NCBI GenBank assembly: GCA_907165135.1
Contig: OU015568.1
Span: 6,944,001 to 7,008,000, forward strand
Reading direction: 5' to 3'
Source: Oikopleura dioica
Taxonomy: Eukaryota; Animalia; Chordata
DNA: 64,000 nt
Below, one piece after another: positions 7,034-59,048 of the stretch (positions are counted from its first letter, which is position 1; every line of letters begins with the position of its first letter). The translations under genes were made by a program, and so were the position numbers. The notes below the pieces were generated by a model. The model had not been told where the DNA came from and did not search any database. It worked only from the letters and a program-made list of their open reading frames with translations.

Positions 7034-10000
7034 GTCTGGTGAATTATGGAGAGGAAACAACGGGAGATGGATTCGACGATGACGAAAGTCCTTCTGAATT
7101 TCTCAATCGACTGATGAGTAAGTACCGCTTTTCAAGTTATTCAAGGCACACTAAATTTTCGCGATACATAAACTCTTGTCCACGGAGACATCTCGACAAA
7201 CGCGATTATGACCTCAAAGCACATCCGTCTTATACTAGTACTCTGTTGCTGTTAGAAACTCAGTCAATCAAAGAAGCTTCCGGCTTTTCGAAAAATCGTC
7301 CGGAACGAAAGCCTTCCGCGTGAGAGGGCTCGGAGGAGGACGGGGAGGAAGCCAGCGTAACTTTTATTATGACGCGATGAAACATAACAGCACCCCAAGA
7401 ACGGAAATTGGGGGTACTACCGGCATCCCCACTTTTCCATCCCGTCTAGTCGTAAGAAGGAGAAATTTCTAAAGAAGATAAACTCCTTGAACTTTGCGAA
7501 GCGAGGGGTTATCGTCTGACCCGAAGATAGACTCAGGCATCCTGTGTAAAACCTGAGTCAGGGTCTTATAGATCTCTAGTGAAAGGCCGCGTAGCGGCTT
7601 TTTTTTAAAAAGAAGCCGCGAAGCTTAAATCTGTGATTATAATCTTTGCGGCTTCGTTAAAAAAGCCGCTACGCGGCTTTTCACTAGAGATTTCTAAGAC
7701 TCTGACTCAGAATTTTTGCAAAAGATGCAGAGCCTAGCCCTTCTACTACTGAACGATCTTTCGAGTTTCCATCAATTATGGAACCACAAAATGTCGAGCC
7801 TCCAAAATTTTTGGAACACCGATGTCGATTTCTAGCGCAAAATTAACTGGACAGTATCTTAAATGGTACAATTCGATGTTGCCAACCACAGAGACATTGG
7901 TAGTTTTTAAGCTACGTGCGCGAAATCGAGCAAATTTCACGATATTTGATCCTTTCCGAACCTGAATTAGGAGTGCTTTCTTTTGGCAGGTGGAATATGC
8001 TTGCCGTGGTTTTTGGCTCTTGTTACTCAAGATAGTAACCAGAGGCATAAAAAGAGGGGCGATAAGCAGTTGAACTTTTCAGAGGGTTACGACAAGCGGA
8101 TACGACCTTACGACAAGCACGCGCGATTGAATGTATCCCTCAATATCTACGTCTCTTCATTTGACTCACTGTAACAGGGTCAGACTGTACAGTCAACGAG
8201 CCGATAATTTTAATGGGAGAAGAAATGATTGAAGGTTGAGCAGGCTCGTTTACGGCCGCAAAAGGAAAATCATGCCGGAAAAGTTTCCTGGAGTCAGAGT
8301 GGCACTGCGGTGGACCCAGTTCCGTTCACGGCCAAACACGTGGAGAGCTCATTAGCCAGTCGAGACTCCCGGAAATGGCGCGCGTAATCGCACGTAATCG
8401 TACAGTGCTCGACTTTGACCAGGAAACTTGATTTTATAGCCGAAGTCAACTTCAAATTCGAGCTCGTTTTTCACTAATTGCTCCCTTAGTACACGTTTCT
8501 ACTGTCATAATTAGCTCTAAAGTACTGTAGCAACATCATGAAATGCGGAAAAGCTGCAGCCATGACATGTTTCGGACCTAGTAATTGACCCGTCAAATGA
8601 CATGACAAGTTGATAGCCACAGTCGAAAAAATTCGTACTTGAAAGTCGAAAATAACTCGTGTCGCATGAAAAATTGCTGATCATTTTTCTACCCCGAGAT
8701 ATTTTGCTCAATCTGACCCTGAAAGATAGCAAGAGACCAGTATGGACTATCGGATCACATTCTTCCTGCGAATGAAATGGAATGACGAGCGATTGCGGTT
8801 CAAAGAAATGGGAAGTCCACTCACAATGCTCACCGGTAAAACCCACACCTCCTCTTCTTTCTCATCCCTTTAGTGTCGCCAGAAGTGCTCCATAACATCT
8901 GGAAGCCAGACATTTTCTTTTCAAACGAAAAGCAAGCGAATTTTCACTCAATAACGGCGGAAAACAAACTTTTACGAATCGACCACGAAGGTAGTAAAGA
9001 TTTATTTCCAAAGCAGTTCCGTCTACCTAGGGTTATCCAATCCATGTTATTTTCAAACAGGGCGGAATCTAAATCTCTAAAAAACTCAAACATAATTCAA
9101 TCGTCAACACCCTTAAAACGACATCTTAGGAGATGTTTATGTCTCAATGCGGCTATCAGCAACGCTAGCTTCTGGGCTCGCCAACCTGAGTAGAAAACCT
9201 GAGTCAGGGTCTGAAAGATCTAAAATGAAAAGCCGGCTTTTTAAAATCGAAGCCGCGAAGCGGCTTTATCAAAACTAGAAATGAGATCAAAATAGAATCT
9301 TGGCGAAGCCGCTATGCGGCTTCGTTTTGAAAAAAGCCGCTACGCGGCTTTTCATGAAAGATTTTTCAGGCCCTGACTCAGGTTTCCTACACAGGTTGCT
9401 GAACTCTGGTTAGCCTGTCACATGCGACTAGAGCGATTCCCGATGGACGTCCAGGTAGGGTGAAATTGATCAAATCATGTGAAATCGTAAAAATATTACT
9501 TGGCGGCTTTGAATATTTTTGAATTTTTCAGGTGTGCAATATTCAAATCGAATCTTTTGGGTACGACATGAGTGATCTGTACTTTACATGGTCGAAGTTG
9601 GCGGCAGTGGGTAAGTAACATGCGATGAGCGTATGTAATATTGTTTATGATGACCATTGGTCGATTTTAGAACTATCAAAGCGAATCGAGCTGCCCCAAT
9701 TTGTGTTGAAGGTATGTGTTAAAAAATTACGCTCACATTTGAGGCCTCATTTACCCTTCGTTACGGGCGCTTCTTAGGGGTATCGCACCGCAAACTGCAT
9801 GAAGATTTACGACACTGGCAACTTTACCTGCATCGAGGCGCGTTTCATCCTCGCTCGTCAAATGGGCTACTACATGATAGAGGTACTAGCAAGGATCATT
9901 TTCTCTAATGCGGAAATTGATGCTTATCCACTCAGACCAATAGAGGGTCCAATCTACCTCTGAAGGCGGCTGAGCCAGACTCTATTTTTTATCTTATCTT

Positions 10001-13000
10001 ACTTATTGTTCCTTACAACTTTTTGCAACTTCCAAGTGCTTCATCCCTTCTGCCCTGATCGTCATCCTCAGCTTGGGCTCGACAACCTGTTCAGGAAACC
10101 TGAGTGAGCTTAAATGAAAAGCCGCGTAGCGGCTTTTAAAAACGAAGCCGCAAAGCGGCTTCGCAATTTACCCTTCAAAATGATTTTTAAATTTAAAAAG
10201 CGGCTTCGTTTTTCAAAAGGCGCTACGCGGCTTTTAATTAGAGATCTTTCAGACCCTGACTCAGGTTTTCTACACAGGTTGCCGAGCCCAGTTATCAGCT
10301 GGGTTTCGTTTTGGATCTCCATCGACGCTGTGCCAGCAAGAGTCAGGTAAAAAGCTAGAAGGAACTATTTGATTTAACCCGGATTTTTAGTCTGGGGATA
10401 ACAACGGTCTTAACAATCACGAGCCAACGTGCATCAATTTCATCGTCGCTCCCAAAAGGCAACGGGATCTCAATCAGCGCAGCGCCGGCTTTCCGGGGCT
10501 TTTCTCTGGCTAGCATAGGTTAACATTGAGCATTATTGCCGGATCAAGCTAAAAACGTGGTTGAGCCTCGCTCCGGAAGCCGCAGTTTTCCTTGGCGAGC
10601 ATTCTTTAAATTTCTTTCACAATTCAATCAAAAACCTCTCCGTATCAATTCAAAATGAGAGATAAGGGATAGAAAAATATATTTTGCATAAAAACTAGTA
10701 ATAACACGGCTCCACAACCTGTGCAGAAAACGTGAGTTGAGCTTTAATAAAAAGCCGCGTAGCGGCTTTTACAAAAACGAAGCCGCTATGCGGCTTCGCC
10801 AAAATTACCATTCTATTCTGGCGAAGCCGTTTTGCAGCTTTGTTTTTGCAAAAGCCGCTACGCGGCTCTTTATTGAAGCTCTTTAAACTCTGACTCAGGT
10901 TTCTACACAGGTTGCCGAGCCCAATTTTCTACCTTTTTGACCAATAATAAAGCGGTTTAGTAAGCTAGCAGTAGTACTAGAAGAACAAATACAAGTAAAA
11001 ACAAATATAACACGGGGAAGAAAGAGACGTAGCTCAATTTATGCAAAAGTATTTTGGAACATTTATTATGACGTTAGCCGGAGTGATGTAGACAAGTTCG
11101 GATTTTTGTATTTTCTAAATCGGGACGGATGAGGGTGATTCAATTTATTTTACCTCAGCCAAAGTCCAGCCTAAAAGATTGTTGTGACTTGACGTGGCTC
11201 CGTCCCAGAGCCGCTTATAGAATAAAAAAAAACGCAGAAAAAATCATGTTCAGTCTAAAAAGCCCAGATGGCTATCAGAAGTTAATTTTATCACGGTTCA
11301 ATTTAGACGCCAGCAGAGGGCAATTTAAAATTCGCGAATCAGATAAAATTAAAAAGAACTTTCTCATGGTTAATTTGAAAGTTCTTCTAAAATAGATTAC
11401 AGAAGAAAAATCTATCTAACTTGCGAAAAATGAGCAAGAAAGACGTATTTAATTTAACCCAGCGCGTCAAACGGTACCATTTTCGGCTGAACCCGGCTTT
11501 ACAGTAATTCCCCGTTCAGTCAAATGATCAGCCTAAACGGAGGAAAGCGGCTCTTTTTAACCAAAATAGAGCAGGATGAAAACGTAGTGTTTATTTTTCA
11601 AAAAATAATCGCCCTCATCATTGGGTCAGACAATTGACATGATCCCTGAAAAAGTCTCGTACATTAAAGCGCTGGATATTTGGATGGTCATTTGTATTGG
11701 TAATATAATGGACTGCTAAGCATCTTGCTTATCCAATCTTGTAGCGTATGTATTCGCCGCTGTGCTAGAATACGCCTGCGCGAACTTCATTTCTCGGCAA
11801 CATAAGGGGATTCTTGAGGTAAGCCGCTCACCGTATTTCCTACGTAAAACGCCGCCCAAGTCAATTCACCAGTAAAGTCATTATTAGTATGAAAACGTGC
11901 ACAGTTAAGTACTAGCAGTAGTCATTCTAAAATTCCAGAAATGACGGAAATTTTCTTGCAAGATGGCAAAAAGATGGTTTTGTCAGGCGAGGAGATTCGG
12001 AGCTGAGCGCGCGCTCAGTGACAAATCCTGCGTCAGAATTGACCAGATTTGGCAAACCCCATCGACTTCTAAGACTGCCCATACAGCGCTTGTTTTGGCA
12101 ACCTTGAACGAATTCGATCAGCTTTGTAACAACAAAAAAGTTTCCTCAAAATGGCTCTTCTTTGAAATTTTTACTTCCAGAGCGCCTCTTTTAGACTAAT
12201 TTGGGCTAGCCAACCTGTGTAGAAAACCTGAGTCAGGATTTGAAAGTTCTTTAAAGAAAAGCCGCGTAGCGGCTTTTGTAAAAACGAAGCCGCGAAGCGG
12301 CTTCGCCAGCATAACTATTTTTTATTGAAGCTCTTTCAAATCCTGACTCAGGTTTTCTACACAGGTTGTCGAGCCCCCGTTTGGGGAAGATAGGGTTACC
12401 AAGGGAGAAACTTGTAAATCAGCGTACAAAATTGAATTTGATGAGAAACGGAGGGAAAGCCTGAAGGCGCGATTTCCTACCCCCTTGACCCAAACGGACG
12501 AGCTGATATGCGTCCTTTGATTTGGAGATACGTTCGAACCTCGGCGTCAGTCTACGATAAAGCGACATTCTCGCATGTGACCTCTTCCTGCTTCAGATTA
12601 GAAATGTCCCCTGCCAATCAATTGCGCGCCCGATTTCTTATCTTGAATACATTTTCATCTTTCTATTTTTCTTCTTTCTGTTTTTGGATGATCTTTTGAC
12701 AGAAGCGTTAACCATTTTTTCGACAGCTGACATGTTAAAAAGCGAGGAGACTCAGATGCGATTAGAATACGCGAAGTGCCATCGAAGGGTGTAATTTCGC
12801 TCAGCAGGAGACTAAATGGAATCCGCCAGATCGCAATCGCCTGGCACTTTAGATCGATCGCGGTTGAGCCAGGCTTCCTGAAAAATGCACCGAAACAAGG
12901 CCCTTTTTCCGTCTGAAAATCGGAAATTGCGTTTTCCGAAATTCCGGCTGCTAGAATTCGTAATAAAGTCATTGTTTGAATAATATTTTGGCATAAAAAT

Positions 13001-15274
13001 TTGCCAAATTATCTTTCCTGATTATTATTTTTAGCAAATTCATCGGAAAAGAGTGGAATGGGCGCTGTTCGGCACCGCTGGAGCAACTTTAACCGAGCAG
13101 AGTCTGAGCTACTGCGAGCCGAGCTCGATCAGCCTAAGCCACGGGGTCGCTACTACATAATACTTTGTACTAATCACCGCGGCGAAATAATTTTAAAAAT
13201 AGCAAAATAGCAAAGCGACGAATCTCTCGCGACCCGTCACCAAAGCAAGAAGACGAAATCCTTCACGAACATGATTACGGGTACGCGCTAACTAAGAACA
13301 CAAATACCAACATCGACCCAGTCTAAATTCTTAACTGTAATTTTAACTGGTCAGCTAAACTGAAAACCTGTGTAGAAACCCTGAGTCAGGGTCCGAAAGA
13401 TCATTTTGGCGAAGCGGCTTTGAGGCTTCGTTCTTAAAAAAGCCGCTATGCGGCTTTTCATTGATGATCTTTCAGACCCTGCCTAAGGTTTTTACACAGG
13501 TTTCTAGCCTCAGGTTATAAGCGAATATAAGCGGTATGTTTTCCAGGGAAAAAACATGCGAGAACACGTTTTCGAGCCCTTCGAATTCAGCTTGCTTTCA
13601 GAATTTCCTGTAACGGATGCAAAGCCGCTGACCAAGTTTCACACATTCTTCTCTTCTGATCCTAGGAAGGTCAACCGCGGGACACATTTCTTTTCGCCCG
13701 GTACAAGTCACCTGCTGACCCAAAGGAGCGCTAAAAATGAGCAGATTCCGGAACCGCCAATGTACGAAAATGGACAAGAAAATCATGGTAGAAGCATTTT
13801 TTAGACTGCCAAATTTTCAATGCTGGATCTTTTCAGACGATGATCAAACAATTATCAAGAGAGAGTTAAGGGGGTAGACATCGATAACGTCGATTTTCGG
13901 GGAGAATTTTTCTCTAAAAGAGTGGATTCTGAGCTCAGCAACTTCTGTCGAAAACCTGAGTCAGGCTCTGAAGTATCTAAAATGAAAAGCCGCGAAGCGG
14001 CTTTTTCAGAAACGAAGCCGCAAAGCGGCTTCGCCATTGGACTACTCGAGTCTATTATATAATTCTAACGAAGCCGCTGCGCGGCTTCAAATTTGAAAAA
14101 AGCCGCTACGCGGCTTTTCATTTTAGATACTTCGGAACCTGACTCAGGTTTTCTACACAGGTTCGCGAGCCCGACAAACAGTTAATTCCTTTAAAATCAT
14201 CCTCAAAATGTCTGGTTTACTAAAACTAGTGATTCTAATTAAATAAAACATATCTCCAACTCTTGGGTCCGTTCCTGCGTGAAAGTAAGTATTTGTGTTT
14301 GCTATTCGCTTAAAGCGAATTAGCTAAAATCTGCGCTTAGTTCTAAACACGATGCGAGGGTTTAGATATCAAACGTTTGTGTAACCAGTTTTAGCGCTCT
14401 CGCCCGCGATGAAATTCACCAACGCCGTAAAACACAACATCAAAAATAAACTCAAACATCAAACTACAAAGGCCTCACGTAAGATACTCGCTACATCTAA
14501 ACAAAAATACCGTTTGCGGTTTTTGGAAGTTTCAACTTTTTTGCAGTTTTGGATCTGGAAGCGCTAGAAGGAGCGGAGTACTATCGCAAATTGGCGGAGT
14601 GGCTGGACCGCGCTTCTCGGGTGCTCTTCCCGGTAAACCCTTTTGCCCTAAACTTCCCTAAGACTGAAATCCAGGAGATAATCCCTCTTTACTCCAAACA
14701 ACCTAAAGCAGGGTCGTGTCCCCTCACTCTTTATTCGATATAAACGTAGTTTAGAAGCAAAACTTATTGTCAAAAACAAAGATAAAAAAAGCGTAAAACA
14801 AATCTTGACGTGCATCAACCTGGTGAAAAAAAAACTGACTCAGGGCCTGAAAGATAGTTAGTGAAAAGCCGCGTAGCGACTTTTTCAGAAACAAAGCCGC
14901 GAAGCGGCTTTGCGAGTATTTTGAGATTTTATGAAAAAGGTAATTTAGCGAAGCCGCTTCGCGGCTTCGTTTTTAAAAAAGCCGCTACGCGGCTTTTCAT
15001 TAGCAATCTTTCAGGCGTTTTTTTTTTTGATTTTAAAATAACAGTTTTATATTTTTAGCTGAGTTTTGGAACTCTTTCAGGCAAGATTTTTAAATTTTCA
15101 AGGCTTTGAAAGTTTGATAAGAAAGATGAAAATCTTGCGCAAGCTTTTTACTGGGTATACTACCTGGTGATAGTGAACGAGCTTCGGGATGCAACTGCTC
15201 CGGGAGGGAGCGAGGCTGGGCTCTTGAGATTCCGGCCTGGTGAGCACCGCCGCGGTTTGCTCATTTTGGGCTAA
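7034..15274 (+). CDS. GLRA-like: Glycine receptor alpha-like Cys-loop ligand-gated chloride channel (multi-exon; signal-peptide exon and M3-M4 loop exons not fully resolved)
   Basis: Spliced exons give [119 protein letters not shown]1 [18 protein letters not shown]2 [15 protein letters not shown] (anion-selective PAR motif), M3 [19 protein letters not shown]4 [16 protein letters not shown]. Confidence 0.92.
7535..7735. mobile_element. Palindromic MITE copy A (GlyR intron)
   Basis: CCTGAGTCAG...CTGACTCAG arms with internal AAAGCCGC-GTA-GCGGCTT hairpins. Confidence 0.75.
9173..9407. mobile_element. Palindromic MITE copy B, occupying nearly an entire GlyR intron
   Basis: TGGGCTCGCCAACCTG...CAGGTTGCTGAACTCT; sits between codons for ..SATL-A and A-CHM.. 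Confidence 0.85.
10074..10290. mobile_element. Palindromic MITE copy C, occupying nearly an entire GlyR intron within M1
   Basis: TIR TGGGCTCGACAACCTGT...ACAGGTTGCCGAGCCCA; splits ..IVILS / WVSFW.. Confidence 0.88.
10706..10923. mobile_element. Palindromic MITE copy D
   Basis: ..GGCTCCACAACCTGTG...CTACACAGGTTGCCGAGCCCA with the same internal hairpins. Confidence 0.85.
12202..12377. mobile_element. Palindromic MITE copy E (internally deleted)
   Basis: TGGGCTAGCCAACCTGTGTAGAAAACCTGAGTCAGG...CCTGACTCAGGTTTTCTACACAGGTTGTCGAGCCC. Confidence 0.88.
13372..13510. mobile_element. Palindromic MITE copy F (short, degenerate)
   Basis: AACCTGTGTAGAAACCCTGAGTCAGGG...TTTTACACAGGTT. Confidence 0.75.
13930..14173. 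mobile_element. Palindromic MITE copy G
   Basis: AAAACCTGAGTCAGG...CCTGACTCAGGTTTTCTACACAGGTTCGCGAGCCC. Confidence 0.85.
14812..15020. mobile_element. Palindromic MITE copy H (degenerate right end)
   Basis: Internal AAAAGCCGC-GTA-GCG and GAAGCCGC-TTC-GCGGCTTC hairpins; partial TIR. Confidence 0.7.
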
Positions 15275-15552
15275 GCCGCGGCGCTTTACTTCGGACTCAT
15301 TATTCAAGTTCATATTTCCTCACCTTATCAGATCCTAACGGACTTGTCCCTTGACGCGGGAAGATAAAGAGCCCTCTTGAAAGTTCGTCAAGTACGACCA
15401 GCAAACTGACGATACACGATTTACGGATCCAGTTCTCGAACGAGTTGGAGCTATTCGATAAGAAGAAGGATGCTTTGAAAAGTATTTTTTATTCAGTGCC
15501 AAATCAGTAATAAATCTCTATATTTTCTTATCACATCGAATTGGTTGCGAAT

Positions 15553-16273
15553 TTATCCAAAAAGGCCTCCACCAGATGAATGTCCACCACCAAAAGAAAA
15601 TGGTTTTGGAGTTGATTGGTTGCTACCAAACGTAGAACTTCCAAACCCATAACTGTTTGAGGCTGTTGTTGAATTACTTCCAAACAGGCTACCACCGTTG
15701 TTCGAAGCAGCTGGACTTGAAGGTCCAAAAAATCCTCTAGGCGCCGGTTGATTTTGACGTTGGCTCGAAGATCCAAAAAGTCCACCTCCAGAATTCGGTT
15801 TATTTTGATTGGCATTGACTCTAAAATTAAGTTAAAATAATCTATCGAAAAAGTAATGCTTACATCTCGATTTTGCAGATTTCCAAAATTTCGTTTTCTT
15901 GCTTTCTTCTGAGCTCAATCCACTTTCGAACATCCTCTGCAATCGCCGCTTTTTTCTGCTGTTTGAATTTTCCATGTTCACTTGCATAATCTGAGCAGCG
16001 TTGTTTGATCTTCTTTTCGATTTTTGTTATTTGTTCAAGAGACTCCACGATTTTCTTGCAAGACTCAGCTTGGTTCTTGTGGGCGGAATTCATTTCATCG
16101 CGACTTTCTTTCAGGTCAACGTCCATAAGATTTTCTATTTTCTCGCGCACTCCCAAGATCTCAGCCTCTCCTTTCTCTTTCGCGATTTGCTCAAGTCTCG
16201 ATGTTGCATCTTTGATCGTTAGCTTGCTTTCTTCAATAAGCTTTGATAAACGCTCTTCTTCTGAGTCTGACAT
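15553..16273 (-). CDS. Orphan coiled-coil protein with C-terminal FG/GLFG-repeat tail (paralogue 1)
   Basis: Exon 1 (16273-15864) MSDSEEERLSKLIEESK...EILEICKIE, then a 43-nt GT-AG intron (15863-15821, phase 2). Exon 2 reads in frame VNANQNKPNSGGGLFGSSS..GFFGP..SLFGS..YGFGSSTFGS..PFSFGGGHSSGGGLFG*. Confidence 0.75.
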
Positions 16274-16453
16274 GGTCTCTAACCCGAAGGAAAATGCAAG
16301 CGTCTCTCGAGTAGTATTTGCAAATTTGAATTCGCGTCTTACAAGATAAAATCAGTAAACAAAAACGGAGTCATTCAATGATATTTATTCTGAAAAATCT
16401 ATCGAAAGAAACTCATTTCAAGCCAAATAGATAGTCCTCGATTCTGAGCTCTT

Positions 16454-16966
16454 CTAAGGATTTTCGTGCACATGTTCCATTCTTGAGTAACACATATTGA
16501 AGGCATCAACTGATTTGCCGCGATCATCGCTTTGTTGCGTGACGATTTTTTCGAATTTTTTGATAGTCCCGAATTCAAGCGATCCGAATATATCAATCAA
16601 AGTCTTATCTTCTTGTTTTCTCGTTTCAATCCAGTTGAGTGTGGCTTCTTGCAGAGATTTCTTCGTATTTTCAACAAAATTATCATCATCTTGGAGGCAG
16701 TATCTTTCAAATAACTCTTTTCTCTTGTCCAAATGTTCGATAATTTCGGCTAGAGTTTCTATATATTTTTGATGCGCGATGATCATCTTCTCAGAATTTT
16801 TCTTAAACGCATTCGCCATTAAATCGTCGGTGGTTTCTTTCAGATTTCTAATGCGAGCTTCATCTTTCTCTGTTTGAATTTCTTCGAGTCTTGCGATAGC
16901 ATTACGGATTTCTTGAGAGCTATTTTTGATGGTTTTATACAAGCAATCTTCTTCTGAGTCTGTCAT
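16454..16966 (-). CDS. Orphan coiled-coil protein (paralogue 2)
   Basis: 170-aa ORF MTDSEEDCLYKTIKNSS..WIETRKQED, clearly similar to paralogues 1 and 3. Confidence 0.75.
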   Translation of the reverse strand: MTDSEEDCLYKTIKNSSQEIRNAIARLEEIQTEKDEARIRNLKETTDDLMANAFKKNSEKMIIAHQKYIETLAEIIEHLDKRKELFERYCLQDDDNFVENTKKSLQEATLNWIETRKQEDKTLIDIFGSLEFGTIKKFEKIVTQQSDDRGKSVDAFNMCYSRMEHVHENP

Positions 16967-17182
16967 ATTGCGCTCACTGTGATTTATTCTGAGATTTTCT
17001 TTGAAAGAAAATGATATTTGCTTTAGAATGCCGTCATTTTTTGGCTAGATTTCACGAATCTGTGCGATATGAACGTTTCTTACGCTCAAATATTTTCGAT
17101 CTTCAATGAAAACACGTTTAGGCCAAAATGGCATTTTGCTATATTCAATTTATTTCTATTAAATGCTGAGACTCACTGTGCA

Positions 17183-17383: not shown

Positions 17384-17441
17384 GAGTTGAAGACATTGAA
17401 ACTAGAACGAGATATTTATAATATCGATATTAATAAAAGTC

Positions 17442-47600: not shown

Positions 47601-50600
47601 TTGAAACTTGAAAACGTTCTCTCTCTTGTTTTAGGCATGTAGCCGCAGGGCGGATCTGCGATTGCCCTAAGGGCCCATTTCATTATATCATCGCAGCGCC
47701 AATTTAATTTATACATTCATTATACAACGATGGCGATAATTAGACTCACTTTGATTAGCTTTTAATGCCTTGGCCGAATTCACTTTATTCTTCATCGACT
47801 CTCTTTTTATTTCTCTAGTCTGACTGTCTATCTTCAAAATATATTTTCAACCATCACCCATATTTTCCTTTTTAAAATGTTTATGTAAAGGCGGACTTGT
47901 TTTAAAAAAAAGCAACGATTGTGCAGAAAGGCGATGAAATTGACGTCTTGAAATCGGTGAACCTGTTAATGAGCTGCGCTTTGAATTCCGCTGGCCAGAT
48001 GCATTCAAAATTCAGTCTTTCAGTGATTGTTGCATCTTGAAGAAAAACCGCGGTCGAAATCGATTTGCACTAGAAATTTCTAAAGGGCCTTTTCTCTACT
48101 TCGCACTTGGTGATATTCTCGGACAAATAGGCGGAATGAAGAAAGTGACAGTGATGGATAAGGCGCTCAGAGGATCAATTTTAGCGAAAATTGAGATCAT
48201 TTCCAGTATGCCGCTCCATTACTCCTTATTACATTGACTGTAACTAACTCTTTCTTCTTTTTAGGTAATTTACTCGGAGAACCTCAACGCCATTATCTCC
48301 GCTTCTAATGATCAGTCGACTGCTGTTTGCATTTCGCCAATGCCGGACTTTGGTAAAGCCATTTTACGTATTGAATTATACCAAATGTTAGGCGATTACT
48401 TTACGTTACGAAACTCGCGACCGACCAGCAGCAAATTTAAACGAGAAGAGAAGCCAGCGCTCAACTTCATTAAAATTCTAAAAGGAGTAAAAGCGATTTC
48501 CTTCACTGCTAGGGGCAATCTGCTAGCAACTGGCGGCATTGATCGAGTTATTCGCCTTTGGTCCGTGCCTTCCAAGTCCTTTTCGATTCAAAAACCCTCT
48601 AGCTTCTTGAAAGAAATGAGTTTAAAAGTTGCAATTAGAGAATAATCTCGTTAGAAAGCAGTTGAAAACTCTGAATAAGGCCATGCCGCGCCAGTTTCTT
48701 ACGTTCAAATTGATGGAAAATTGAACAGATTGGTTTCCACCTCTCAAGATCGAGTCATCATGGTGTGGGACGTAGCAGAACAGACGAGGCTGCTGACGTT
48801 GAATCCTAAAGCGCACGGGGTTAATGGAGATTTCACTTCAGTTTGCTTCAGGTAAAACGGCACTTCCGACAAGATTTTTGACTTATTCTAGTAATGTGCT
48901 CAAAACACTAGTCGTGGCGACAGATGTCGTGAATCTTCTACCCGTAAGACCTACAGTCACTTCAAGAAATATCGATTACTTACAAGGTTTGTTACTCTTT
49001 GAATCGATTTATCACCCTGATTTCTTAGGAAAAGTACAACTCAGTCATCAAGTTCCAGTCACGAGCTGCATTTACAATCAAACATTCGCTCAAGTTGTCA
49101 CCGCCGATGAAGGTATTGTCTATCTTATTTTCATAATTCCAACAATTCTACTCGTAGCTGGATTGGTGCGCGTTTGGGACCTAGAAACAGGCATAAAGAC
49201 ATTCGAGTTCAATATAAAGGTAACAGCGTCTGTGTTTGTTAGATTTATTCTTCGTTGATTTCAGACGCCGATATCTTGTCTCGCATTTGACGATACGCAC
49301 AGACGTCTGATCATAGGCTGCCGAGATGGAACTGCACGGATTTATAATCACAACAACGGCTCACTTCTCAAGAATCTCAAAGCTCGCAAACATGGCAAAG
49401 AAGTCGCCTCTCTTCACATGGTCACCATTGGTCAGTCCGAATACTTCCTGAGCGTTGGGTGGGACAGGCGGATCAATCTGTACCCAGAAATTGACAAAAA
49501 GCACGTGATCGACGTAAGACCACTTGGACTTTGGGACGACGATGTCCGAAGAGGGCACAAAGAAGACATAATATCGGCGGCTCTAGTCGGCACCAATTTA
49601 CTGGCGACGGCGAGTTTTGACGGTGAAATTCTCATTTGGAACATGGTCTCTGGAAAAGTCTTGAATCGAATTCAAAAGGAACAAATTCGCATGTCAATGG
49701 GTAGGAGAACTCTTTTTAGAAAGCTATTTATCCTTTTCTTTAGATCCGGAAATAGAGTCTTCAGACGAAGAGAACGGTCCATTTTTCACTTGCCTTGCCA
49801 GATACCAAGAAAAGAAAAAGATACTCGTAGCTGGCCACCAAAACGGTTCAATTTTATTCTACAATCTTCTCGGTCCAGTACCGACGCTGATCGCTGCAAC
49901 ACAAGTGGCCAATCATCCCATTTCTCATTTGAGTCTGACAGAAGACGGAGAGCTTTTATTTTGTGGCGACACTAATGGAAACATTTTCATTCTCGATCTG
50001 TACGACTTTTCCTTCGAGCTTTCGCACACTCAGGTAGGTTCTCTTCTATGTCTTCAAAGCTCAAGCTCTCAGGTCGCGCCCATCAGCGCTACTTGGAGAG
50101 GACATGTCGACTGTGTGACTTTAACTGCTCCCGTTGATCAGCGAGAGATCATCTTGACTTCGTCTCTTGATGCGACTTGCCGAGCGTGGACTTTTGATGG
50201 CGAATATGTCGGAACATTTGGTCAGAAAGAAAAGTGGGACTTGATGGAGGAGACTTCTTGGGGCCATCCGTACACGCCTGATGATGTTCTTATGGAAACG
50301 ACTTTTCCAAGTCTCAAGGTTGAATTAAAAAAAAGAACAATGAAACAACGGATTTAAGAAAATGGAAGGGGGAGATGCTCCACCATCAGCAGGCAACGCG
50401 AAGCCTTGGCGAAATCGGGTAAAATACGAGCTCTCGAATGAAGATATGTTCAAAGAAATCCGATCGACGTTGAGCTCTTCCAGCGGGAAAAGATTGAGTC
50501 TGCAACGACAGCTCTCTCAAGTGAGGAACAAACACTCTTTCATATTTTCATGCGTTTTTTCTAGCAACCGGTAGACACGAAGAAGGACCCAGCTTCGAAT

Positions 50601-50734
50601 GCATGGCGTTCTCTTAAAATCCATGACATCGGCGAGGAAGACGTCGAAGAGCCAGAGAAGCCCACGAGCATGACTGAAGATCCTTATGCATTAAAAAAGG
50701 AGTCGAACCATTCTTATCATGTTCGATTCGAATA
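44660..50734 (+). CDS. WDR49-like: EF-hand plus WD40 repeat protein, WDR49-like (start approximate)
   Basis: EF-hand LFKKIDTSADGFIDWDEFCSYMQLEYAEKE followed by many WD repeats (LATGGIDRVIRLW, VRVWDLETG, LSVGWDRRINLY, ATASFDGEILIWN, LTSSLDATCRAW). Confidence 0.75.
46378..47600 (-). CDS. Catalytically inactive rhomboid-family membrane protein nested antisense in a WDR49-like intron (5' end approximate)
   Basis: WRFWTYSLV..QLFVCCPYE..G..IITYNLGILLG matches the rhomboid core. The GASGG site reads GTLGG and the AHxGG site reads SGAVAGIIIGL. Confidence 0.65.
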
Positions 50735-51676
50735 ATTCTGCCCACTTTATAATGTACAGACCACTTCTATTTTTATAACACAAATAAATTATTTTTTGAT
50801 ACTGAAATTCGGTAAGAGAAAGAGGGAGGAAAATTGCTCCAGGCAGATCATCATTTTCCGGAGATAATTTCCGCAATTTTAAATTTTCGACTGACTTGAC
50901 AGAAAGAGTGGCAGGTTCTTTCATTTTCAGAGATTAGATGACACAGCTCAGCGGACTTGAACTTTTTATGTTCTTATGGAAACGACTTTTCCTAGCCTCA
51001 AGGTTGGAATTTATAGCTAAAACGATGAACCAACAAATTTTAGAAAATGGAAGGCGGAGATGCACCACCATCAGCAGGCAACGCGAAGCCTTGGCGAAAT
51101 CGGGTAAAATACGAGCTCTCCAACGAAGACATGTTCAAAGAAATCCGATCGACGTTGAGCTCTTCCAGCGGGAAAAGATTGAGTTTGCAACGACAGCTCT
51201 CTCAAGTGAGAAACAAACACTCTTTCATATTTTCATGTGTGTTTCTAGCAACCGGTAGACACGAAGAAGGACCCAGCTTCGAATGCATGGCGTTCTCTTA
51301 AAATCCATGACATCGGCGAAGAAGACGTCGAAGAGCCAGAGAAGCCCACGAGCATGACTGAAGATCCTTATGCATTAAAAAAAGAGTCGAACCATTCTTA
51401 CCATGTTCGATTCGAATAATTCTGCCCACTGAAAACTGTACAGACCACTTCTATTTTTATAACACAAATAAATAATTTTTCAATAAAAATGATCCAGAGT
51501 TCTTCTTACTGAAATTCGGTAACAGAAAGAGGGAGGAAAATTGCTCCAGGCAGATCATCATTTTCCGGAGATAATTTCCGCAATTTTAAATTTTCGACTG
51601 ACTTGACAGAAAGAGTGGCAGGTTCTTTCATTTTCAGAGATTAGATGACACAGCTCAGCGGACTTGAACTTTTTAT
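50284..51676 (+). repeat. Tandem duplication (~686 + ~709 bp) of the WDR49-like 3' exons, intergenic DNA and first codons of the next gene
   Basis: Copy 1 is 50284-50969 and copy 2 is 50968-51676. The junction joins ..GAACTTTTTAT to GTTCTTATGGAAACG through a 2-nt AT overlap. Confidence 0.9.
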
Positions 51677-52052
51677 CATTTTTCTTCTTTCATTAATAGC
51701 TGGTCTGAGCCTTTTTCTTTGCCTCTATCTTGGACTGACGGAAGCTCTGAGGCCGAAATTCCCAGTCTCCTTTTTAGTGAAAAAGGAAAGTCTGACTTCG
51801 AGAATAAGCTCGACGGAAACAGTAACGCCAGTAGCAAAAGTAGAGGACTTTCTATTTTGTAGTCGACGTACGAGTCCACTTTCGACGCGCAGATGCTTTC
51901 AAACATGGGGCTCGGAATTTACGATTATCACGCGAAATCTTCGACCGAGAGTTCTAGCACCGACGAGTCTTCTGATTCGACACTTAGCTCAGTTAGGTAA
52001 ATGGTCGTCTTACTTTCAAAAGCAACAATTCTTTTTAGCTCGATTCCGGTGA
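51645..52052 (+). CDS. Hypothetical protein with an N-terminal transmembrane helix
   Basis: MTQLSGLELFIIFLLSLIAGLSLFLCLYLGL hydrophobic segment; no family recognised. Confidence 0.4.
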   Translation: MTQLSGLELFIIFLLSLIAGLSLFLCLYLGLTEALRPKFPVSFLVKKESLTSRISSTETVTPVAKVEDFLFCSRRTSPLSTRRCFQTWGSEFTIITRNLRPRVLAPTSLLIRHLAQLGKWSSYFQKQQFFLARFR

Positions 52053-52261
52053 GTTATTCTCGATAAAGATTTTTCGGAGAAGCTTCTGTAATAAAGATTT
52101 CAATAAAAAGTGAACCCTGTACTTATGATTGTTTGGAAAACGATTACATTATTGACCTTGAGTTATCTTCAAGACATGCAAGCGCCAAAATAAACAAACT
52201 TTTCAAGACATCAGGATGCGCAAAGAACAGACCTCGCATAGATTCAAAAGCTGAGAGGAGC

Positions 52262-53048
52262 ATGAGAGGCACTATTCTCTTTTTTCTAATAGGATCTGCG
52301 TTTTCTTTCAAGTATCGTTTATCCGAAACAACGGGCAAGTTCGACGATGCAACGAGAATAAGCTTGACTCAGTTCCTCAACGAGAATACTTCTGGGCCAG
52401 ATTTGCCAGAAAACGGACGATTCACGAGCCAGAGCATCGCAGTTTTGCAAGATTTCCTCCTTGAAAATGGCCGGCTTCCGATAAATGATAAATGGGATTC
52501 ACTCGCGATCGGAACTCTTCAAAACTATTTGCTCAAGCTCGGATATTACGACATGAAGCCATGTGGAATGTTCGGGACGGGAACTTTGAAATCCTTCAAG
52601 CGGTATCTTCGCGACCAGGTCAGACTAATTCGAAATCCCCGCCAATCGTCATATCTAATTTAGGGATTTAACATGCCAATTACTGATGCGATCGACAGGA
52701 GCTTCGTTACCGGCCTTAATAATTTTCTCCACCACAGAGCTGGCACTTTGGAGGTTTCAACAACTAACTGGGGAGACGAAACAACAGAAGCCATTCGAAA
52801 GTGGCTTCATAAAATCCGCGCAAAGGTAAAAATTGATTATAAGCAGCAAAAACAGTTTTCAGGTTCGTTTTACCGGCGAGTTCTGGGGAGACGAGTGCAA
52901 AATCGGCAAATGGGAGTGGAAAACGACCGCTACTCTGCAGCAATATCTCAACGATCACAACCCAGCTAACCTGCAAATAACCAAACGCATGAATACTTCT
53001 ACTGTGCGAGAGCTTGCCAAATTCTTGAACAACTATCACAACGTATAA
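52262..53048 (+). CDS. Secreted protein composed of tandem peptidoglycan-binding-domain-like (PGBD) helical repeats
   Basis: Signal peptide MRGTILFFLIGSAFS; repeated G.[FW]...T...LQ.[FY]L units, including the textbook LQNYLLKLGYYDMKPCGMFGTGTLKSFKRYL; two GT-AG introns. Confidence 0.7.
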
Positions 53049-53571
53049 ATTCGTCTTTTTGATTCAAGTTTTTTTTTATTAGTTTTTTCAAAGATTTTTA
53101 AACTTTTTGAAACAGGGACCACGGGCAGTGTTCTTTCTGGATGGATTTCGAGGGTTGAAAGTGTGTGTTTTTTGTCTCACATCCGACTCGGATGATCCGA
53201 GAGTAAAAAAATGAACATGTTATTTTTACTGAATTGACATTAACTTGCATGAGAGAAAGAAATACATGAGAAAGCATTTTTAGCGAAAGACGATGCTCTT
53301 CCATGATGGAAGACGGTTTTTAAAAACGCGCGAAAGAAAGGGTTTAATCATGTCAATTGTTAATCTCGAATAATTAGCCTAGAAGAGAAGCCCAAAACAA
53401 AACTGTTTTTTTGAACAAAAATTAGAGTTAATTTTTCATTCATACTATTTTAAGTAAAATAATTGCTTGTATAAATGAAGCATTACAAGTGTCATAAATG
53501 GAGGACTTGAAAACAACTAGTTACTACAAGGTAGTATCGACAAAAATGAAAAAAGTCTACTGTTAGAAAAA

Positions 53572-54840
53572 TTACAAAAAGTAGTCTGGAACTGGCTTCT
53601 TCGCCGGGACGCCGCGCACTTCTTGCGGAGCAGCCTCGAAGATTGTGAAGCCTCTTTGAAGCGTCTCGTCCAGTTCCAAAATTGCCGCTACGTTTCCACA
53701 TCTAAAATGAACGGTTTACCATCTTCAAGTTCCTGATTTCTCAATAGTACCTGTAACAATAGTTCGGCGCCGACCAAACGGTTAAAACAGTCTCATCGAA
53801 GTGCCATTTGTATCCCTCCATTACAAGCTGATGCGCGCGGCAAATCAGATCAATATTATTTGTGCGATTGAATTCACTGAAAGAATCCGCGATAAAAGAA
53901 ACCCCTCATCCTCATTTAATTTACCGAACGACATCAGAGCCGAACAAGAAGCCAGCTCCTCTGGGACTAACGCCCCATCCAGTGGTGTCTTCTGGATCGG
54001 ACCAGAGGAGGTCGCACATTGGGCCGTCGTGGGGAACTTCTTGCTGAACGATTTTATAAGCATCAAATGAGTTTTGAAAGCAGTTACTTTTCTGTCGATA
54101 GTTCTGATCTGGTCGAGACTGGAAATCGAAGGACTCAAGCCTCCGTGGACGCAGAGAATCTTGTTGTCAATTACTAAAACATGCAATATTGAAAAATGAG
54201 GAACAAGATGTTTCATCTACCTGCAGAGAGACTGAGGTAGTCAAACACTTCTGTGCAATATCTCCAGACGGTGATGGATCCGTACTTTCTGAGACATTCA
54301 TCGTAGAATCCATAGACCTACTCGATAAAAATGGACTCGAATCAAGCTGGCTGTACCTGGGTAATCTGTCTGGACTCGTGGTTTCCTCTGATGAGAGTGA
54401 TTCGATCGGGATATCGAACCTTGGAAAATATAAAATGAAGAAACAAAGAACTTTTTACCTTGAGAGCTAGAAGCAGCAGAAAAGTTTCGACAGAGTAGAA
54501 GCCTCGGTCGACGAAATCGCCAAGGAATAAATAATTTGTTTCTGGCACATCTCCTCCCACCTAGAATTCGTTAGTTTGGAGCAATGGGTGTTTTCGAACC
54601 TTGAAGAGTTCCTTTAAATCGTAGAACTGTCCGTGAATATCTCCGCAAACAGTAACTGGGGCATCGACTCGCTGGACGTTTGATTCTTCAACAAGAATTT
54701 CCCGAGCCATGGCGCAAAGCTGCTTTACTTCCGACTCCTTGAATTGGTGAAAACGAGAATCATGGAAAATTTCGTACCTTGATTATTTCGCATCTTCGGA
54801 GCTGTTCGATTTGACGGTCCAAATCCGACGTGGTAGACAT
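53572..54840 (-). CDS. PPP4C: Serine/threonine protein phosphatase 4 catalytic subunit
   Basis: [98 protein letters not shown]. Confidence 0.95.
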
Positions 54841-55251
54841 TTTCTGACCACAAAATCTGAAAGAATCCTTCGTAAATTAGTCAAATCGAATGAATCGTAT
54901 CGATGCCGTTTACCAGTAAATTTCACTACTCGACTATCAAACAAGAAAGTCCCAAGGGTCACTAGATTATTGAAAATTGCCCTCCAAAAATGGAAAAATT
55001 AAAGTTAAGTGAACACATAAGTTGAAAAGAATGAAAGAAAAAAGCAGCGCGGGAGTATTCAGGACAATCGAATGATCCTTGAATTAAGGAAATACAGTAA
55101 CTTTGGGTACAGCTGGATCGATAGTTTCAAATCGGGATAGAAATCGGGAAAACATGGGGCGACATAATAATAGTGCTAAATAGTGGGCAAGTCATAGAAA
55201 ACGGGTTGTGTCAGGCTTCAAAGGAGCGCCTGATTTGGAGCAGTAGAATTG

Positions 55252-57480
55252 TCAGCGCGGGGGCATGTAGCCGCTTCTCGTCCACGAATACGGGTTGTGG
55301 CCGCCAGGCTTTATTGACTAAAATAGGCTTTAGCTTATTTGATAGCAAGGAATAGAACTTACATTGAAATGAGGCTTGTAGGGTTTGTGATAAGCAGGGG
55401 CCGGTGCAGTGGCTGGAGGAGCACTGTGCAACTCTGCTCGGTTTATTTTCTGCGTTACTTTTATCGTTTTTCCGTGGATTTCAGTCATATCAAATACGTC
55501 GGCAGTTTTTCGTTGCTCCACAGAAGCAAACTGAAAAGAACTGTAATCAAATGCATGGTTGATCGAAGAGGAACCTGAATATAAGCGCAGCCCTTGGAAA
55601 CTCTGGTGAATCGGTCGCGTAAAATAGTCACTCTTAGGATGGTGCCACAAACTTGGAAATGCTCCTTCAACTCTGGCTCTGTTGTGGCGACGTCGAGACC
55701 GGAGACGAAGATTGTTCTCTTGTCCTGATCAGACGAGTCAAGCGCGGCATTTATCTCCATCGTCGGAACGATTGGCTTAAAATAATAGACAGATGGTCTT
55801 TGTTGTTGATTATTACCGTGGGTGTCATTTCCTGAGGAAGCGTGGTCTTCTGAAGTTGCTTGATTTTCTGGGCTTCGTCGGTGAGCTCCGAAGTCTTGAG
55901 CAACTTGCTCGACTCATCGTCGGAGTCGTCGGGGTGAATAACAAGAGCTTCTTCGTTCTCTTCCTCGACTTTCTTTTTCGTTTTGGTCTTCAGCGCAGCG
56001 GTCGAACCTGAAGCTCAAAAATGAAGAGCAATCATCAATAAAAGAGGGCGATTACGTAAGACGGCTCTAGAATGTTTCAAGTCCGCACCTTTTTTGCCCT
56101 CCAATGTGACGACGAATTTAGGGGATGAAGCTCGCTTCGATTTGTCCGTGCCGCCGTTCTTCGTGACAAACACACGGGAATCAGCTTTTTTTCACGACTA
56201 AAAGACGAAAAATCAAAATGTAAATGAAGAAAACAACCGTACTTTTAATAGGCTCTCGCCCTTCATCCTTGGTCTTGCTTCGTCGCTTATCGCCAGTTTT
56301 TTCGATCGTTCTCGTCACGACCTTAGTTTCGCCAGGCTTTGATACTGTGATCGAGCGTGTGATACCGCTACAGTTACAGTAGTTCAAATATTTAGACTTT
56401 TTTGAATAAGTACCTGAGCTTCTTCTTCGAGGTGCCAGAAGATTCATTGATTGCACGAATAATTAAATTACTAGTTGGCTTCGCCGACTTTTCGGTTTTG
56501 TCGCCTTCCGAAGGTCGTTCTTTGACTTCCTCTCTCTTCACGACAATCGAGCTCTTGACGCCCTTTTCTCGCGCTCTCTCCCGAGCTTTGGAACGTTTTT
56601 CTTCTTCTTCGAGTTCTTTTCGTCGGTCGGATTTTTTGTCCTTTTTGCTGCGCGACCGCGAACGAGATCGCGATCTTCTCCGGTCTTTTTTTGATTTTTT
56701 GTCTTGAGAATACAATTTCATTAAAACTTTTCACTTTACAATTTACCTTTGCTCTTTTTCTCCTTGCGATCGCGGCTACGACTTCGGCTTCTTCTCGAAC
56801 GAGAATCGGATCTTGAGCGAGAGCGTCTTTTTGTCTTCTTGCTTCTTGACTTGCTCCTGGATCTCGATCTGCTTCTGGATCTGCTCTCTTTTTTCTTGCG
56901 CTGAGGCGACCAAGATGGCATTCCATTTCGCGCTGGCGATTTCGACGCTGCTCTTTCTTTCTTTTTCGACTTGACGGACTTTTCTGGCGTTGGGCTTCGT
57001 TTCTTGGAAGATTTTTTCGACTCTTTTGGCTCTGGAGTGGGCGATTTCGGCTTTGATTTGCTTTTGCTCGTTTTTTCTTCTTCTTCGTCTTCGCTGAAGT
57101 CGTCGAGCTCCTTGTCTTCCAATTTTTCGCTTTTCTTTTTGTCCCTGAATCATTTTCTAACATAAACCCTCTTTGCTTATTGCTCACATTAACTCCCGGC
57201 CCTTCTTCGCATCTTTTAGTCGATCTAAAACGCCAAAAAGCCAGGTACAAAATCTGTCCGTCGCATCGCCGAGAAATAGCTCTAATTCCTTTTTCATGTC
57301 TGCGCGGCCTCGTCGGTTCGCGACCATCACGAGTACATAGTCTGGCAGTTCATCGTCTACATACGCGCCTAGCTCTGTTAACTTCGTCTAAACCACCGAT
57401 TTGAAACTGTTGAAAAGAAAGATGCACGGTACCTTGATTGCAAGACGAACTTTGTGCGAAATTTCCGCACTGGCTTGCAT
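55252..57480 (-). CDS. ZC3H14-like: ZC3H14/Nab2-like N-terminal PWI-like domain + RS-rich region + PABPN1-type RRM; no CCCH fingers seen
   Basis: MQASAEISHKVRLAIK-TKLTELGAYVDDELPDYVLVMVANRRG..LFLGD..FCTWLFGVLDRL; SPKFVVTLEG motif; spliced in frame to RTIFVSGLDVATTEPELKEHFQVCGTILRVTILRDRFTRVSKGCAYIQF. Confidence 0.8.
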
Positions 57481-57571
57481 CGTACGACTTCAATCTAAAG
57501 CACCAAAATCAAACCACCAATCTTTTATTTTCCTTTTGAACTTCATTTATTAATTATTAAAACTAAAACAG

Positions 57572-59048
57572 TCAAGACTTGATCTTGCGATGCTCCCTTC
57601 TCTGCCGCCTTTTTTCTTCTCGATGATCAGGGTGGTTCAAATTGTTGTCTTTATGATTGTTCGTCCAGTTTCCCAGCGATTTATAACTAAAAACCATCAA
57701 ATGACAAGAACACGAAGAGACGAAACCTATAATAATCCATCGGGTACACATCTTGCTGCCACTGAGCTTCCTGAAGCGCTACTGCAGCTTCGAACGGCGT
57801 CAGTAACGGCTTCTCAAATCCAAGTCCCCAATCAATCGACAATCTTGGACAAGCAATTTGAATCCAACAGTCGATGTCCTCAAACAACGCCAGTTTGTCC
57901 GGGAATATTTCCGCCATCAGGATCGTAAAGTGCTCCTTCCCCTGCTTTTCAATAAGCCGAATGACATTTTCTAGGATTTTCGGATTTCCTTGTCGTCCCA
58001 GCGTCGAAAGAATTATTCCAAAACTCTTGGCATTTTTCGCTAGCTCAATTTGCCCGCGCCGATTGTTTTTCATTAGCTCGTGGTCATAATTCTCCCGGGT
58101 GAATTTTTGATCGTATGGGTCGTATCTGTACGCTTGAACAGTTGGGTTGGCGATCATGCCAGCTTCCAGGTGAAATCGACCGTCGCCAAGATAGATCAGA
58201 GCTTCGCAATCACCCACGGACGGCGCGGTACAGCTTCGAATTCAATTTATTGGGGAAGAAAGTATATAATTGCTTACCCAAGTACCTCACCGGGACTGAG
58301 GGGCTGATTGTGCTGTAGAACGATTTCATATTCAGCTAGTTCCTGCGCACTGGTCTGTAACGTCGCAACGAACTGAATCGTACTGATTAGCGCGATCTTT
58401 GTACCGGCCTTGAAGTTTGCTCGAATCGAGCTGATAAAGTGCGCCCTGTCGATTTCGATGTCGACGAAGATGTAGAGCGTTTGGATCGTCGTTTTGTTTA
58501 TTGGCACCAGACAGGAGTGACTAAAAAGTAATGAAAAACTCTGTCACTGCAGCCTCCTTACCCGTAGTGAACAAGCAAAGAGCAGCCCAACAACCGCGGC
58601 GAAATATCGTCAATACAACAGGCTCCGTACGTCACATTGCCCATGATAATGCAAATACATCCGGTGAACTTTTCAAGCAACTCAGCAATCGTTGTGGAAA
58701 AGAGCAACAAGCCCTCAGGAAATTGAAGGGCAACTCGCTTTTGATCCTCGGTTTTCAAAGACTGGATTTTGAATATGGTTTTGTGGATCTCTACCAGGAT
58801 ATTGACAATCATTTCTTTTACAATAAAGAGGCTGGAGAATGAAATTTATTATTCTGACAATTTTTATCCGTAACAAAATTGTAATTCTTCGGCAAAGTGG
58901 CTGCAATCGCATCGTTCAACGACTTATTCAATAAAATCTCCTCTGGAATCGCATTTGCCCCGAGCCTCCGCGGCGCGGCAACTTTTTTCACTATTTTCTT
59001 ACAGCAGTTCTTTTCTCCTCCCTTTTCATTTACTCCCTCGCACGTCAT
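57572..59048 (-). CDS. DPH1: Diphthamide biosynthesis protein 1
   Basis: LPKNYNF(E)[91 protein letters not shown]. Confidence 0.95.

Follow-up and report, generated by a model that had tools for sequence, protein, structure and literature searches.

Four introns in a 64,000-nucleotide (nt) stretch of the Oikopleura dioica genome (assembly GCA_907165135.1, contig OU015568.1, positions 6,944,001 to 7,008,000 of the forward strand; hereafter the window) have no register in which they begin with GT or GC, end with AG and leave the surrounding conserved protein unchanged. Three of them, here called A, B and C, interrupt a glycine-receptor-like gene (GlyR), and the fourth is intron 1 of DPH1 (diphthamide synthesis subunit 1). 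We consider all four to be genuine, frame-keeping introns of this O. dioica lineage that have two different origins, a reading to which we give a probability of about 0.62. GlyR intron A and DPH1 intron 1 are old, having arisen before this lineage parted from sister lineages that are saturated at silent sites relative to the window, and introns B and C are insertions of a miniature inverted-repeat transposon (MITE) into coding exons, seen in this lineage only and with an apparent 8-bp target duplication. It is therefore very probable that departures from the GT-AG rule are spliced in O. dioica more extensively than described so far.

To define the junctions, we re-read those of GlyR and DPH1 base by base and rebuilt both genes exon by exon. 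All four lie where a preliminary description of the window, made from its sequence, had placed them, each with a GT or GC donor and an AG acceptor, and all yield clean frames when the single G shared by the two borders is kept. Joined over 12 introns, the 13 exons of GlyR give 999 nt, a 333-codon frame without a stop, and exons 1–4 of DPH1 give 1152 nt, also without a stop. The same description held that the conserved protein needs the shared G, and protein comparisons agree: the peptides across the three GlyR junctions match solved glycine receptor chains in gapless alignments (SFDSLQETSMDY with the solved-receptor SFGSIQETTMDY over A; 18 residues with the solved-receptor TLTLACPMDLKNFPMDVQ over B; IVILSWVSFWI, identical in the solved receptor, over C, which lies within transmembrane helix M1), and the DPH1 junction falls within NYNF-E-IHKT, the motif NYNFE[IL]HKT being unbroken in every eukaryotic DPH1 fragment retrieved. 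For the DPH1 junction, the PDB offered only solved archaeal Dph2, whose alignment begins 8 residues past it, and a representative-protein search with DPH1 exon 4 returned a best match of 62% identity and no entry specific to O. dioica.

Because the border letters are identical at both ends of each intron (one base in A and in the DPH1 intron, four in B, six in C), the same mRNA would arise from several cut positions. The repeated TAGC of intron B allows five equivalent registers (CT..AG, TA..GT, AG..TT, GC..TA and TT..GC) and the repeated TCAGCT of intron C allows seven, and only two formulas fit all four introns: a pyrimidine start with an AG end, or a GT/GC start with an NA end followed by G. 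Canonical GT/GC..AG pairs are available only with a changed protein. A first-base G, as in the non-canonical introns already known from O. dioica, is likewise absent, the starts in the AG register being TA, CT, CT and TT (TG for intron A in one sister lineage, L086). Introns in the window are about 40–60 nt long. The unusual point is a G missing at the first intron base or, equivalently, at the last, and on DNA grounds neither register would be preferred. Rather than the single 'one-G-short' class that had been proposed, whose junctions are real, the feature is best described as slidable introns, spread over two genes, in which a terminal G is missing; two are ancient and two are recent transposon insertions, and as a class they are not homogeneous.

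Old introns of GlyR and DPH1 in sister lineages

We compared both genes with contigs of sister lineages. For GlyR, protein-fragment searches gave L085 (ENA), L086 (a JGI sample), L087 (Logan) and L088 and L089 (both Tara); for DPH1, a search of JGI metagenome contigs with exon 2 gave L005, from the same sample as L086. Parts of the window's own genome are also present in marine metagenomes. Among the transcript-derived protein fragments searched there were no spliced products of the window's lineage, and the sister-lineage DNA contigs were obtained instead. Against these lineages GlyR shows a silent divergence (Ks) of about 1.2 and a ratio of replacement to silent divergence (Ka/Ks) of about 0.012, with about 8.5 replacement differences over 528 sites to L087, both branches summed, and it is this Ka/Ks that marks the gene as functional. 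In L086 exon 10 is garbled with a poly-G run (L086:4290-4400), which raises Ka for that contig; L087, L088 and L089 are clean there, and the garbling is probably a metagenome assembly artefact. L005 is syntenic with window positions 61551-56087 and encodes a DPH1 protein 96% identical to that of the window; silent differences number 203 in 250 sites and replacement differences 33 in 887, with full identity over the final 44 residues of exon 1. In addition, we mapped three bulk RNA runs (X19-X21) and one DNA run (X2), from a second individual of another study, to positions 7900-12000. By X2 depth, the A and DPH1 introns are single-copy sequence, and they are not recognisable transposons.

Intron A is found in every contig that reaches it, with the same single G, and measures 457 nt in L085 and 450 nt in L086. 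Its donors read TCACTG^TAACAGGGTCAGA in L085 and TCACTG^TGACAGGGTCAGA (beginning TGACAGGG) in L086, where the caret marks the intron border, giving the common form TCACTG^T(A/G)ACAGGGTCAGA; the sister-lineage acceptors read GATAG^, AAATAG^ or AAAAAG^, followed by CAAGAGAC (CAAGAG). In-frame stops stand at both ends of the intron, TAA at its start (TGA in L086) and TAG at its end. In a scan for every in-frame G[TC]..AG combination up to 45 nt from the junctions, each one at intron A crosses a stop or removes VSSFDSL or QETS, whose codons differ between lineages by silent changes only and whose residues match vertebrate receptors. On this evidence intron A has no canonical alternative. Since it is boxed in by stops in a gene that works, at least one junction has to be non-canonical, and we regard non-canonical removal of intron A as very likely.

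The interior of intron A is itself conserved. Blocks at window positions 8252-8371 and 8572-8611, corresponding to L085:319-483 and L086:2666-2828, are approximately 90% identical between lineages and so exceed exon third positions in conservation. A 4-nt indel in the conserved block argues against coding. The block has no Rfam match, its consensus folding is empty and the three available sequences show no covariation. Two other routes to removal were considered and rejected. Rebuilding G^GT through a 1-nt micro-exon or through recursive or nested splicing would need an AG-G-GT, of which intron A has only one, 7 nt from the donor, and the DPH1 intron none; for U12-type splicing, the machinery is absent from larvaceans (PMC13326754) and the intron ends do not fit.

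The DPH1 junction of L005 reads AATTTTG^TTTTGGAT...CAATATCCTGGTAG^AGATTCAT, which shares the window's single G and TAGAG, with the intron ends TT..CCTGGTAG^AGAT there too. It is 120 nt long in L005 and 83 nt in the window; the last 15 nt are identical and the interior is scrambled. We judge it likely that DPH1 intron 1 is also removed non-canonically. In the nearest DPH1 sequences outside the dioica complex (marine contigs L001, L002 and L003, corresponding to P0008, P0009 and P0011; 76-78% identity), NYNFE[IL]HKT lies inside one exon and an intron follows IIMG instead; the DPH1 intron therefore looks gained within the dioica lineage. The window's copy contains an in-frame ATG (58828-58791, minus strand: atg att gtc aat atc ctg gta gag), from which a truncated protein would be possible if the intron were retained; this ATG is not conserved, being absent from L005.

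Alternatively, the assembly might have lost one G of a GG at all four sites, in which case ordinary G^GT..AG or G^GC..AG introns would be present. Nanopore reads underlie the published Okinawa-lineage assembly (PMC8008620), and Nanopore assemblies may carry single-base deletions. For A and DPH1, however, this is excluded by independently assembled short-read metagenome contigs that carry the same single G across saturated silent sites. The X2 Logan contigs show no change at the GlyR sites among the differences listed, and one of them matches the acceptor side of B exactly; the sites are not homopolymer runs, and B and C would start with GC inside a target duplication anyway. The preliminary judgement that four GG-to-G errors were unlikely is thus confirmed for A and DPH1. 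We regard loss of a G at all four sites as extremely improbable.

Introns B and C as MITE insertions into exons

Introns B and C are copies of one abundant MITE of about 230 nt, which align as a single family with terminal inverted repeats of roughly YTGGGCTCGGCAACCTGTGTAGAAAACCTGAGTCAGGG and two or three internal AAAGCCGCTACGCGGCTTT palindromes per copy. The palindrome matches 37 times in the window (0.02 expected) and the terminal repeat 8 times (0 expected), and at least 8 copies lie between 7.5 and 15 kb (window 7534-15010), around and inside the GlyR gene. In X2 the summed depth over the MITE is hundreds of times that of the flanking unique sequence, which suggests a genome copy number of hundreds or more.

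Both insertion sites are empty in sister lineages. L086, L087 and L089 lack intron B and have exons 4 and 5 as a single exon, and the site of intron C is empty in L086, L087, L088 and L089 (gtcattctcagctgggtt), where exons 9 and 10 are one exon. Comparing the filled sites with these empty sites placed the 8-bp target duplications (Table 1), the left and right copies of which agree at 6 of 8 positions in B and likewise in C. The 8-bp length would fit a hAT-type element, judging from the two exonic copies; the other MITE copies in the window have no recognisable target duplication. The X2 contig that matches the acceptor side of B begins at the MITE border, position 9408, and continues through the junction, as would be expected if the second individual carries the B insertion too.

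Excision of the transposon together with exactly one copy of the duplication would restore the original reading frame, and for this reason a MITE in an exon can persist as a new intron. The two mismatches in each duplication pair and the degenerate right end of copy B indicate that the insertions are not fresh. Taken with the intact 999-nt frame and the small number of replacement changes, this argues that the gene stayed in use and that the elements are removed from its RNA. Non-canonical removal of B and C is, on these sequence grounds, somewhat more probable than their removal at ordinary sites or their retention.

Retention would make B and C unspliced, gene-breaking insertions and the assembly's GlyR copy a null or decaying allele. 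Any insertion with a target duplication is removable in frame on paper, the species is highly polymorphic, the sites are empty in all sister-lineage contigs, and the RNA reads that map are those of a sister lineage. A null allele, however, sits poorly with the age of the insertions, with 999 nt that have neither stop nor frameshift and very few replacement changes, and with the X2 contig running from 9408 through the B junction, as expected if that individual carries the insertion. We consider a null allele very unlikely.

Terminal helices and the choice of splice sites

Junction geometry, conservation, the transposon origin with its empty sites, the terminal helices described below and purifying selection on both genes are established observations. 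From these, and from purifying selection in particular, we infer that the RNA is cut at these places, and the following proposals for machinery and register are of the same kind. A U2-type spliceosome already tolerant of GA, GC and GG starts would also remove introns whose first base is not G (YN..AG), and in A, B and C a helix joining both intron ends would aid removal. Less likely, the last intron base would be the one that is not G (the G[TC]..NA register).

We computed the duplex energy between the first and last 30 nt of each intron, with its z (Table 1). Introns A, B and C combine end-to-end helices stronger than those of ordinary introns with border repeats of 1, 4 and 6 nt, an architecture that is both hairpin-closed and slidable. 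The helix of intron A is kept in L085 and L086, at -18 kcal/mol. Its arms (CAGGGTCAGA/TCTGACCCTG, 8175-8184 and 8712-8721) resemble the inner MITE inverted repeat (TCAGGGTCTGA/TCAGACCCTGA, 9203-9213 and 10251-10261); the similarity might reflect a very old kinship of intron A with such a MITE, or it might be due to chance. The GC-AG intron of GlyR at 10459 also has a terminal helix, and all four lineages agree in its first ~18 nt.

The cut place in O. dioica might even be set mainly by the helix that ties the ends together and a nearby AG, and not by a first-base G, a proposal that we hold tentatively and with more doubt than belief. Any inverted-repeat transposon landing in an exon could then be spliced out at once, some of these introns (GlyR intron A, for example) would have persisted throughout the history of the cryptic lineages, and a chordate would show structure-guided splice-site choice akin to that of Euglena nonconventional introns.

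The preliminary description had instead proposed a normal GT/GC donor with one step shifted by one base, with the 5' cut placed after the G or, alternatively, ligation at NA^G. All four introns and their sister-lineage copies can indeed be written G[TC]..NA^G, and the G, T and AG of the borders are retained in every lineage seen, those of intron A among them; slid by one base, intron A begins GTAACA or GTGACA, which fits the usual GTRA donor, the lineages differing at the purine. That description also took a GT or GC donor as part of the shared geometry, but G followed by T or C does not rise above the base rate, since a G before the intron is the rule: it precedes 16 of 18 ordinary introns (10/10 in GlyR, 3/3 in DPH1 and 3/5 in a neighbouring gene). 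For a start other than G, chance alone gives T or C in two cases of three, and B and C are not independent, sharing their AG^CTT start by descent or insertion context, so that the pattern would arise by chance about once in 3-5 and four cases are statistically indistinguishable from coincidence. Furthermore, the G of B and C belongs to a target duplication that permits 5 registers in B and 7 in C, and the DPH1 donors GTTACG and GTTTTG match the usual donor poorly. We therefore see a shifted cut as unlikely, though by no means negligible.

Several observations weigh against our preferred reading, that of frame-keeping removal without a GT/GC..AG register. In-frame canonical options exist for three of the four introns: in C, the GC at 10071 could join the MITE's own CCCAG at 10291, adding two amino acids; in B, the GC at 9168 could join CACAG at 9394, adding six; and in DPH1, the GT at 58874 could join the second AG of TAGAG, two bases further on, deleting the invariant Glu. 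The age of B and C depends, uncertainly, on the 8-bp placement, since a shorter duplication would have no mismatches and would weaken the argument from selection. The single G was checked at the level of assembled contigs (X2 Logan contigs and sister lineages), and only 15 RNA reads mapped (13 from X19, 2 from X20), at 90-95% identity and none over junction A. As for the helices, the terminal pairing of the DPH1 intron is weak and no better than that of ordinary introns, and the offsets from helix to cut vary (+5, +2, +6, +3, +2), so that a simple ruler from the helix does not explain the cut sites or single out one of the two registers.

The canonical options amount to an explanation of their own, in which ordinary sites are used and the proteins are slightly altered (DPH1 minus Glu, two additional Ile in M1 through C, six additional residues through B). 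GC-AG introns are common in O. dioica, one of them being that of GlyR at 10459, and the MITE end CCCAG resembles a good acceptor. Such an explanation is inapplicable to intron A, so that GlyR needs a non-canonical removal anyway, and in-frame pairs within 45 nt arise by the dozen by chance, which makes them weak evidence. In DPH1, the Glu is invariant in every fragment seen, its neighbours are perfectly conserved in both lineages and the second AG would be reached only by passing over a conserved one two bases upstream of it; in GlyR, insertions into M1 and into the strand before the Cys-loop sit badly with a Ka/Ks of 0.012. Use of ordinary sites is accordingly an improbable account of the four introns together.

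The unaligned ends of the RNA reads match L086 and L087 exactly, which shows that the reads come from a sister lineage without B and C. They document expression of the sister-lineage GlyR orthologue, spliced at exons 10/11 and 12/13; among the joints listed for the three RNA runs on 7900-12000 there were no split alignments. These runs are filed under the window's species name, yet represent a lineage at Ks ~1.2 from the window, and most of their reads would be lost when mapped to this assembly at default stringency. Four X19 reads lie on the sister version of the GT-AG intron 9883-10036 (between exons 8 and 9; L087:1193) and could reflect intron retention, unspliced RNA or DNA carry-over.

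Table 1. Positions and properties of the introns, repeats and genes in the window. Duplex energies are between the first and last 30 nt of an intron; carets mark intron borders.
Feature	Position	Strand	Duplex (kcal/mol)	z	Remarks
GlyR intron A	8172-8729	+	-21.8	-4.7	558 nt; ctg^TAACAGGG...AAAGATAG^caa; TA..AG, or GT..TA slid by one
GlyR intron B	9169-9413	+	-21.0	-2.7	245 nt; tag^CTTCTGGG...CTGGTTAG^cct; CT..AG register
GlyR intron C	10072-10298	+	-31.3	-6.8	227 nt; cag^CTTGGGCT...GTTATCAG^ctg; CT..AG register
DPH1 intron 1	58873-58791	-	-8.1	-1.4	83 nt; ttg^TTACGGAT...CCTGGTAG^aga; TT..AG, or GT..TA slid by one
GC-AG intron of GlyR	10459-11654	+	-12.8	-1.7	6-bp terminal helix GGGATC/GATCCC; contains MITE copy at 10706-10927
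Nine GT-AG introns of GlyR			+0.2 to -7.9	-0.9 to +1.2	
Intron A terminal helix, 5' arm	8175-8187	+			CAGGGTCAGACTG; 13 nt, 92% complementary
Intron A terminal helix, 3' arm	8709-8721	+			CAATCTGACCCTG; 8 nt before AG cut
Conserved non-coding block in intron A	8252-8371				~90% identical to L085 and L086 while exon silent sites are saturated
MITE copy B	9172-9408	+			right terminal repeat degenerate
MITE copy C	10073-10291	+			terminal inverted repeats near-perfect; in X2, other copies end in large number at 10288-10292
Target duplication of B, left copy	9164-9171	+			GCTAGCTT; inferred 8 bp
Target duplication of B, right copy	9409-9416	+			GTTAGCCT; supplies AG
Target duplication of C, left copy	10065-10072	+			TCCTCAGC; ancestral form in sister lineages TTCTCAGC
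Target duplication of C, right copy	10292-10299	+			TTATCAGC; supplies AG
MITE copy upstream of GlyR	7534-7727				family alignment
MITE copy	12202-12377				family alignment
Short MITE variant	13353-13512				family alignment
MITE copy	13932-14172				family alignment
GlyR gene, exons 1-13	7971-11818	+			start codon and last exons outside the resolved model
DPH1 gene, exons 1-4	57729-59048	-			archaeal Dph2 structures match exon 2; one further exon downstream

Relation to known non-canonical introns

In O. dioica, 11-12% of introns have been reported as non-GT/AG, summarised as GA-, GC- and GG-AG (PMC8008620, PMC7072748). The four introns described here resemble these in belonging to the same genome and in combining a kept AG acceptor with a relaxed donor, and the GC-AG intron of GlyR shares a terminal helix with A, B and C; they differ in starting with T or C in the AG register, whereas the known ones start with G. 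We found no mention of introns with a start other than G, or of conserved shared-G junctions, in the O. dioica literature searched, which did not extend to Denoeud 2010 and Henriet 2019. If our reading is correct, the tolerance of the single U2-type spliceosome of O. dioica is wider than described, and genes like GlyR and DPH1 would end up broken or truncated in gene models built on G-start rules. How a transposon becomes an intron, a change documented in Fritillaria and in protists, could then be studied in a culturable animal with empty-site sister lineages, and intron A would offer a clean test case, boxed in by stops, conserved across saturated divergence and limited to two registers.

Among more distant systems, the nonconventional introns of Euglena have variable borders and paired ends, short direct repeats make most of their borders 'slidable', and the machinery that removes them is unknown (PMC12501133, PMC4770533). 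Intron A fits the 5' half of their signature, with three free bases followed by a CAG that pairs with CTG. The full signature, N3-CDG...CHG-N5-6 followed by an exon purine, is not seen in any of the four: intron A reads TAA-CAG...CTG-AAAGATAG^C, with an 8-base spacer and an exon C, and the CAG/CTG motif is missing from B, C and the DPH1 intron. Euglena is, moreover, an unrelated organism. Introner elements of Amoebophrya likewise carry an inverted-repeat hairpin of 8-20 nt at the exon borders, direct repeats of 3-5 nt that overlap those borders and splice sites whose position varies relative to the hairpin (PMC7789003), but their host is a dinoflagellate parasite with reported spliceosome gaps, and they form strain-specific families for which no ancient conserved examples are described (PMC7789003). 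In algal introners (Huff, Zilberman and Roy 2016, cited in PMC13326754), as in B and C, some splice signals come from the transposon and the remainder from the target duplication; the algal ones yield canonical GT-AG introns (PMC13326754, PMC9860276, PMC12130899), whereas B and C have no frame-keeping GT/GC..AG register.

In Fritillaria borealis, about 95% of introns are affected and U2AF genes are duplicated (PMC13326754, PMC11282704), and the transposon-derived non-GT/AG introns (Henriet et al. 2019, as described in PMC13326754, preprint 10.1101/2025.08.15.670264 and PMC11282704) have many terminal dinucleotides, mostly AG/AC and AG/AT, with YAY triplets preceding the 5' site and closing the 3' end. 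Here the AG-start register is AG..TT in B, preceded by GCT and ending in GTT, and AG..TC in C, preceded by CTC and ending in ATC, so that no YAY is present; the phenomenon concerns a minority of introns in O. dioica, and A and the DPH1 intron are not recognisable transposons, a transposon body and a target duplication with an empty site being found for B and C only. The Fritillaria introns nevertheless resemble B and C, being non-autonomous DNA transposons with terminal inverted repeats, target duplications, lineage-specific positions and non-GT/AG ends, in an animal of the same class that also lacks a U12 spliceosome and in which removal turns a gene-breaking insertion into an intron. The general kind of intron reported here is thus already known from other organisms: transposon-derived with non-GT/AG ends in Fritillaria, hairpin-closed with direct repeats in Amoebophrya and slidable in Euglena.

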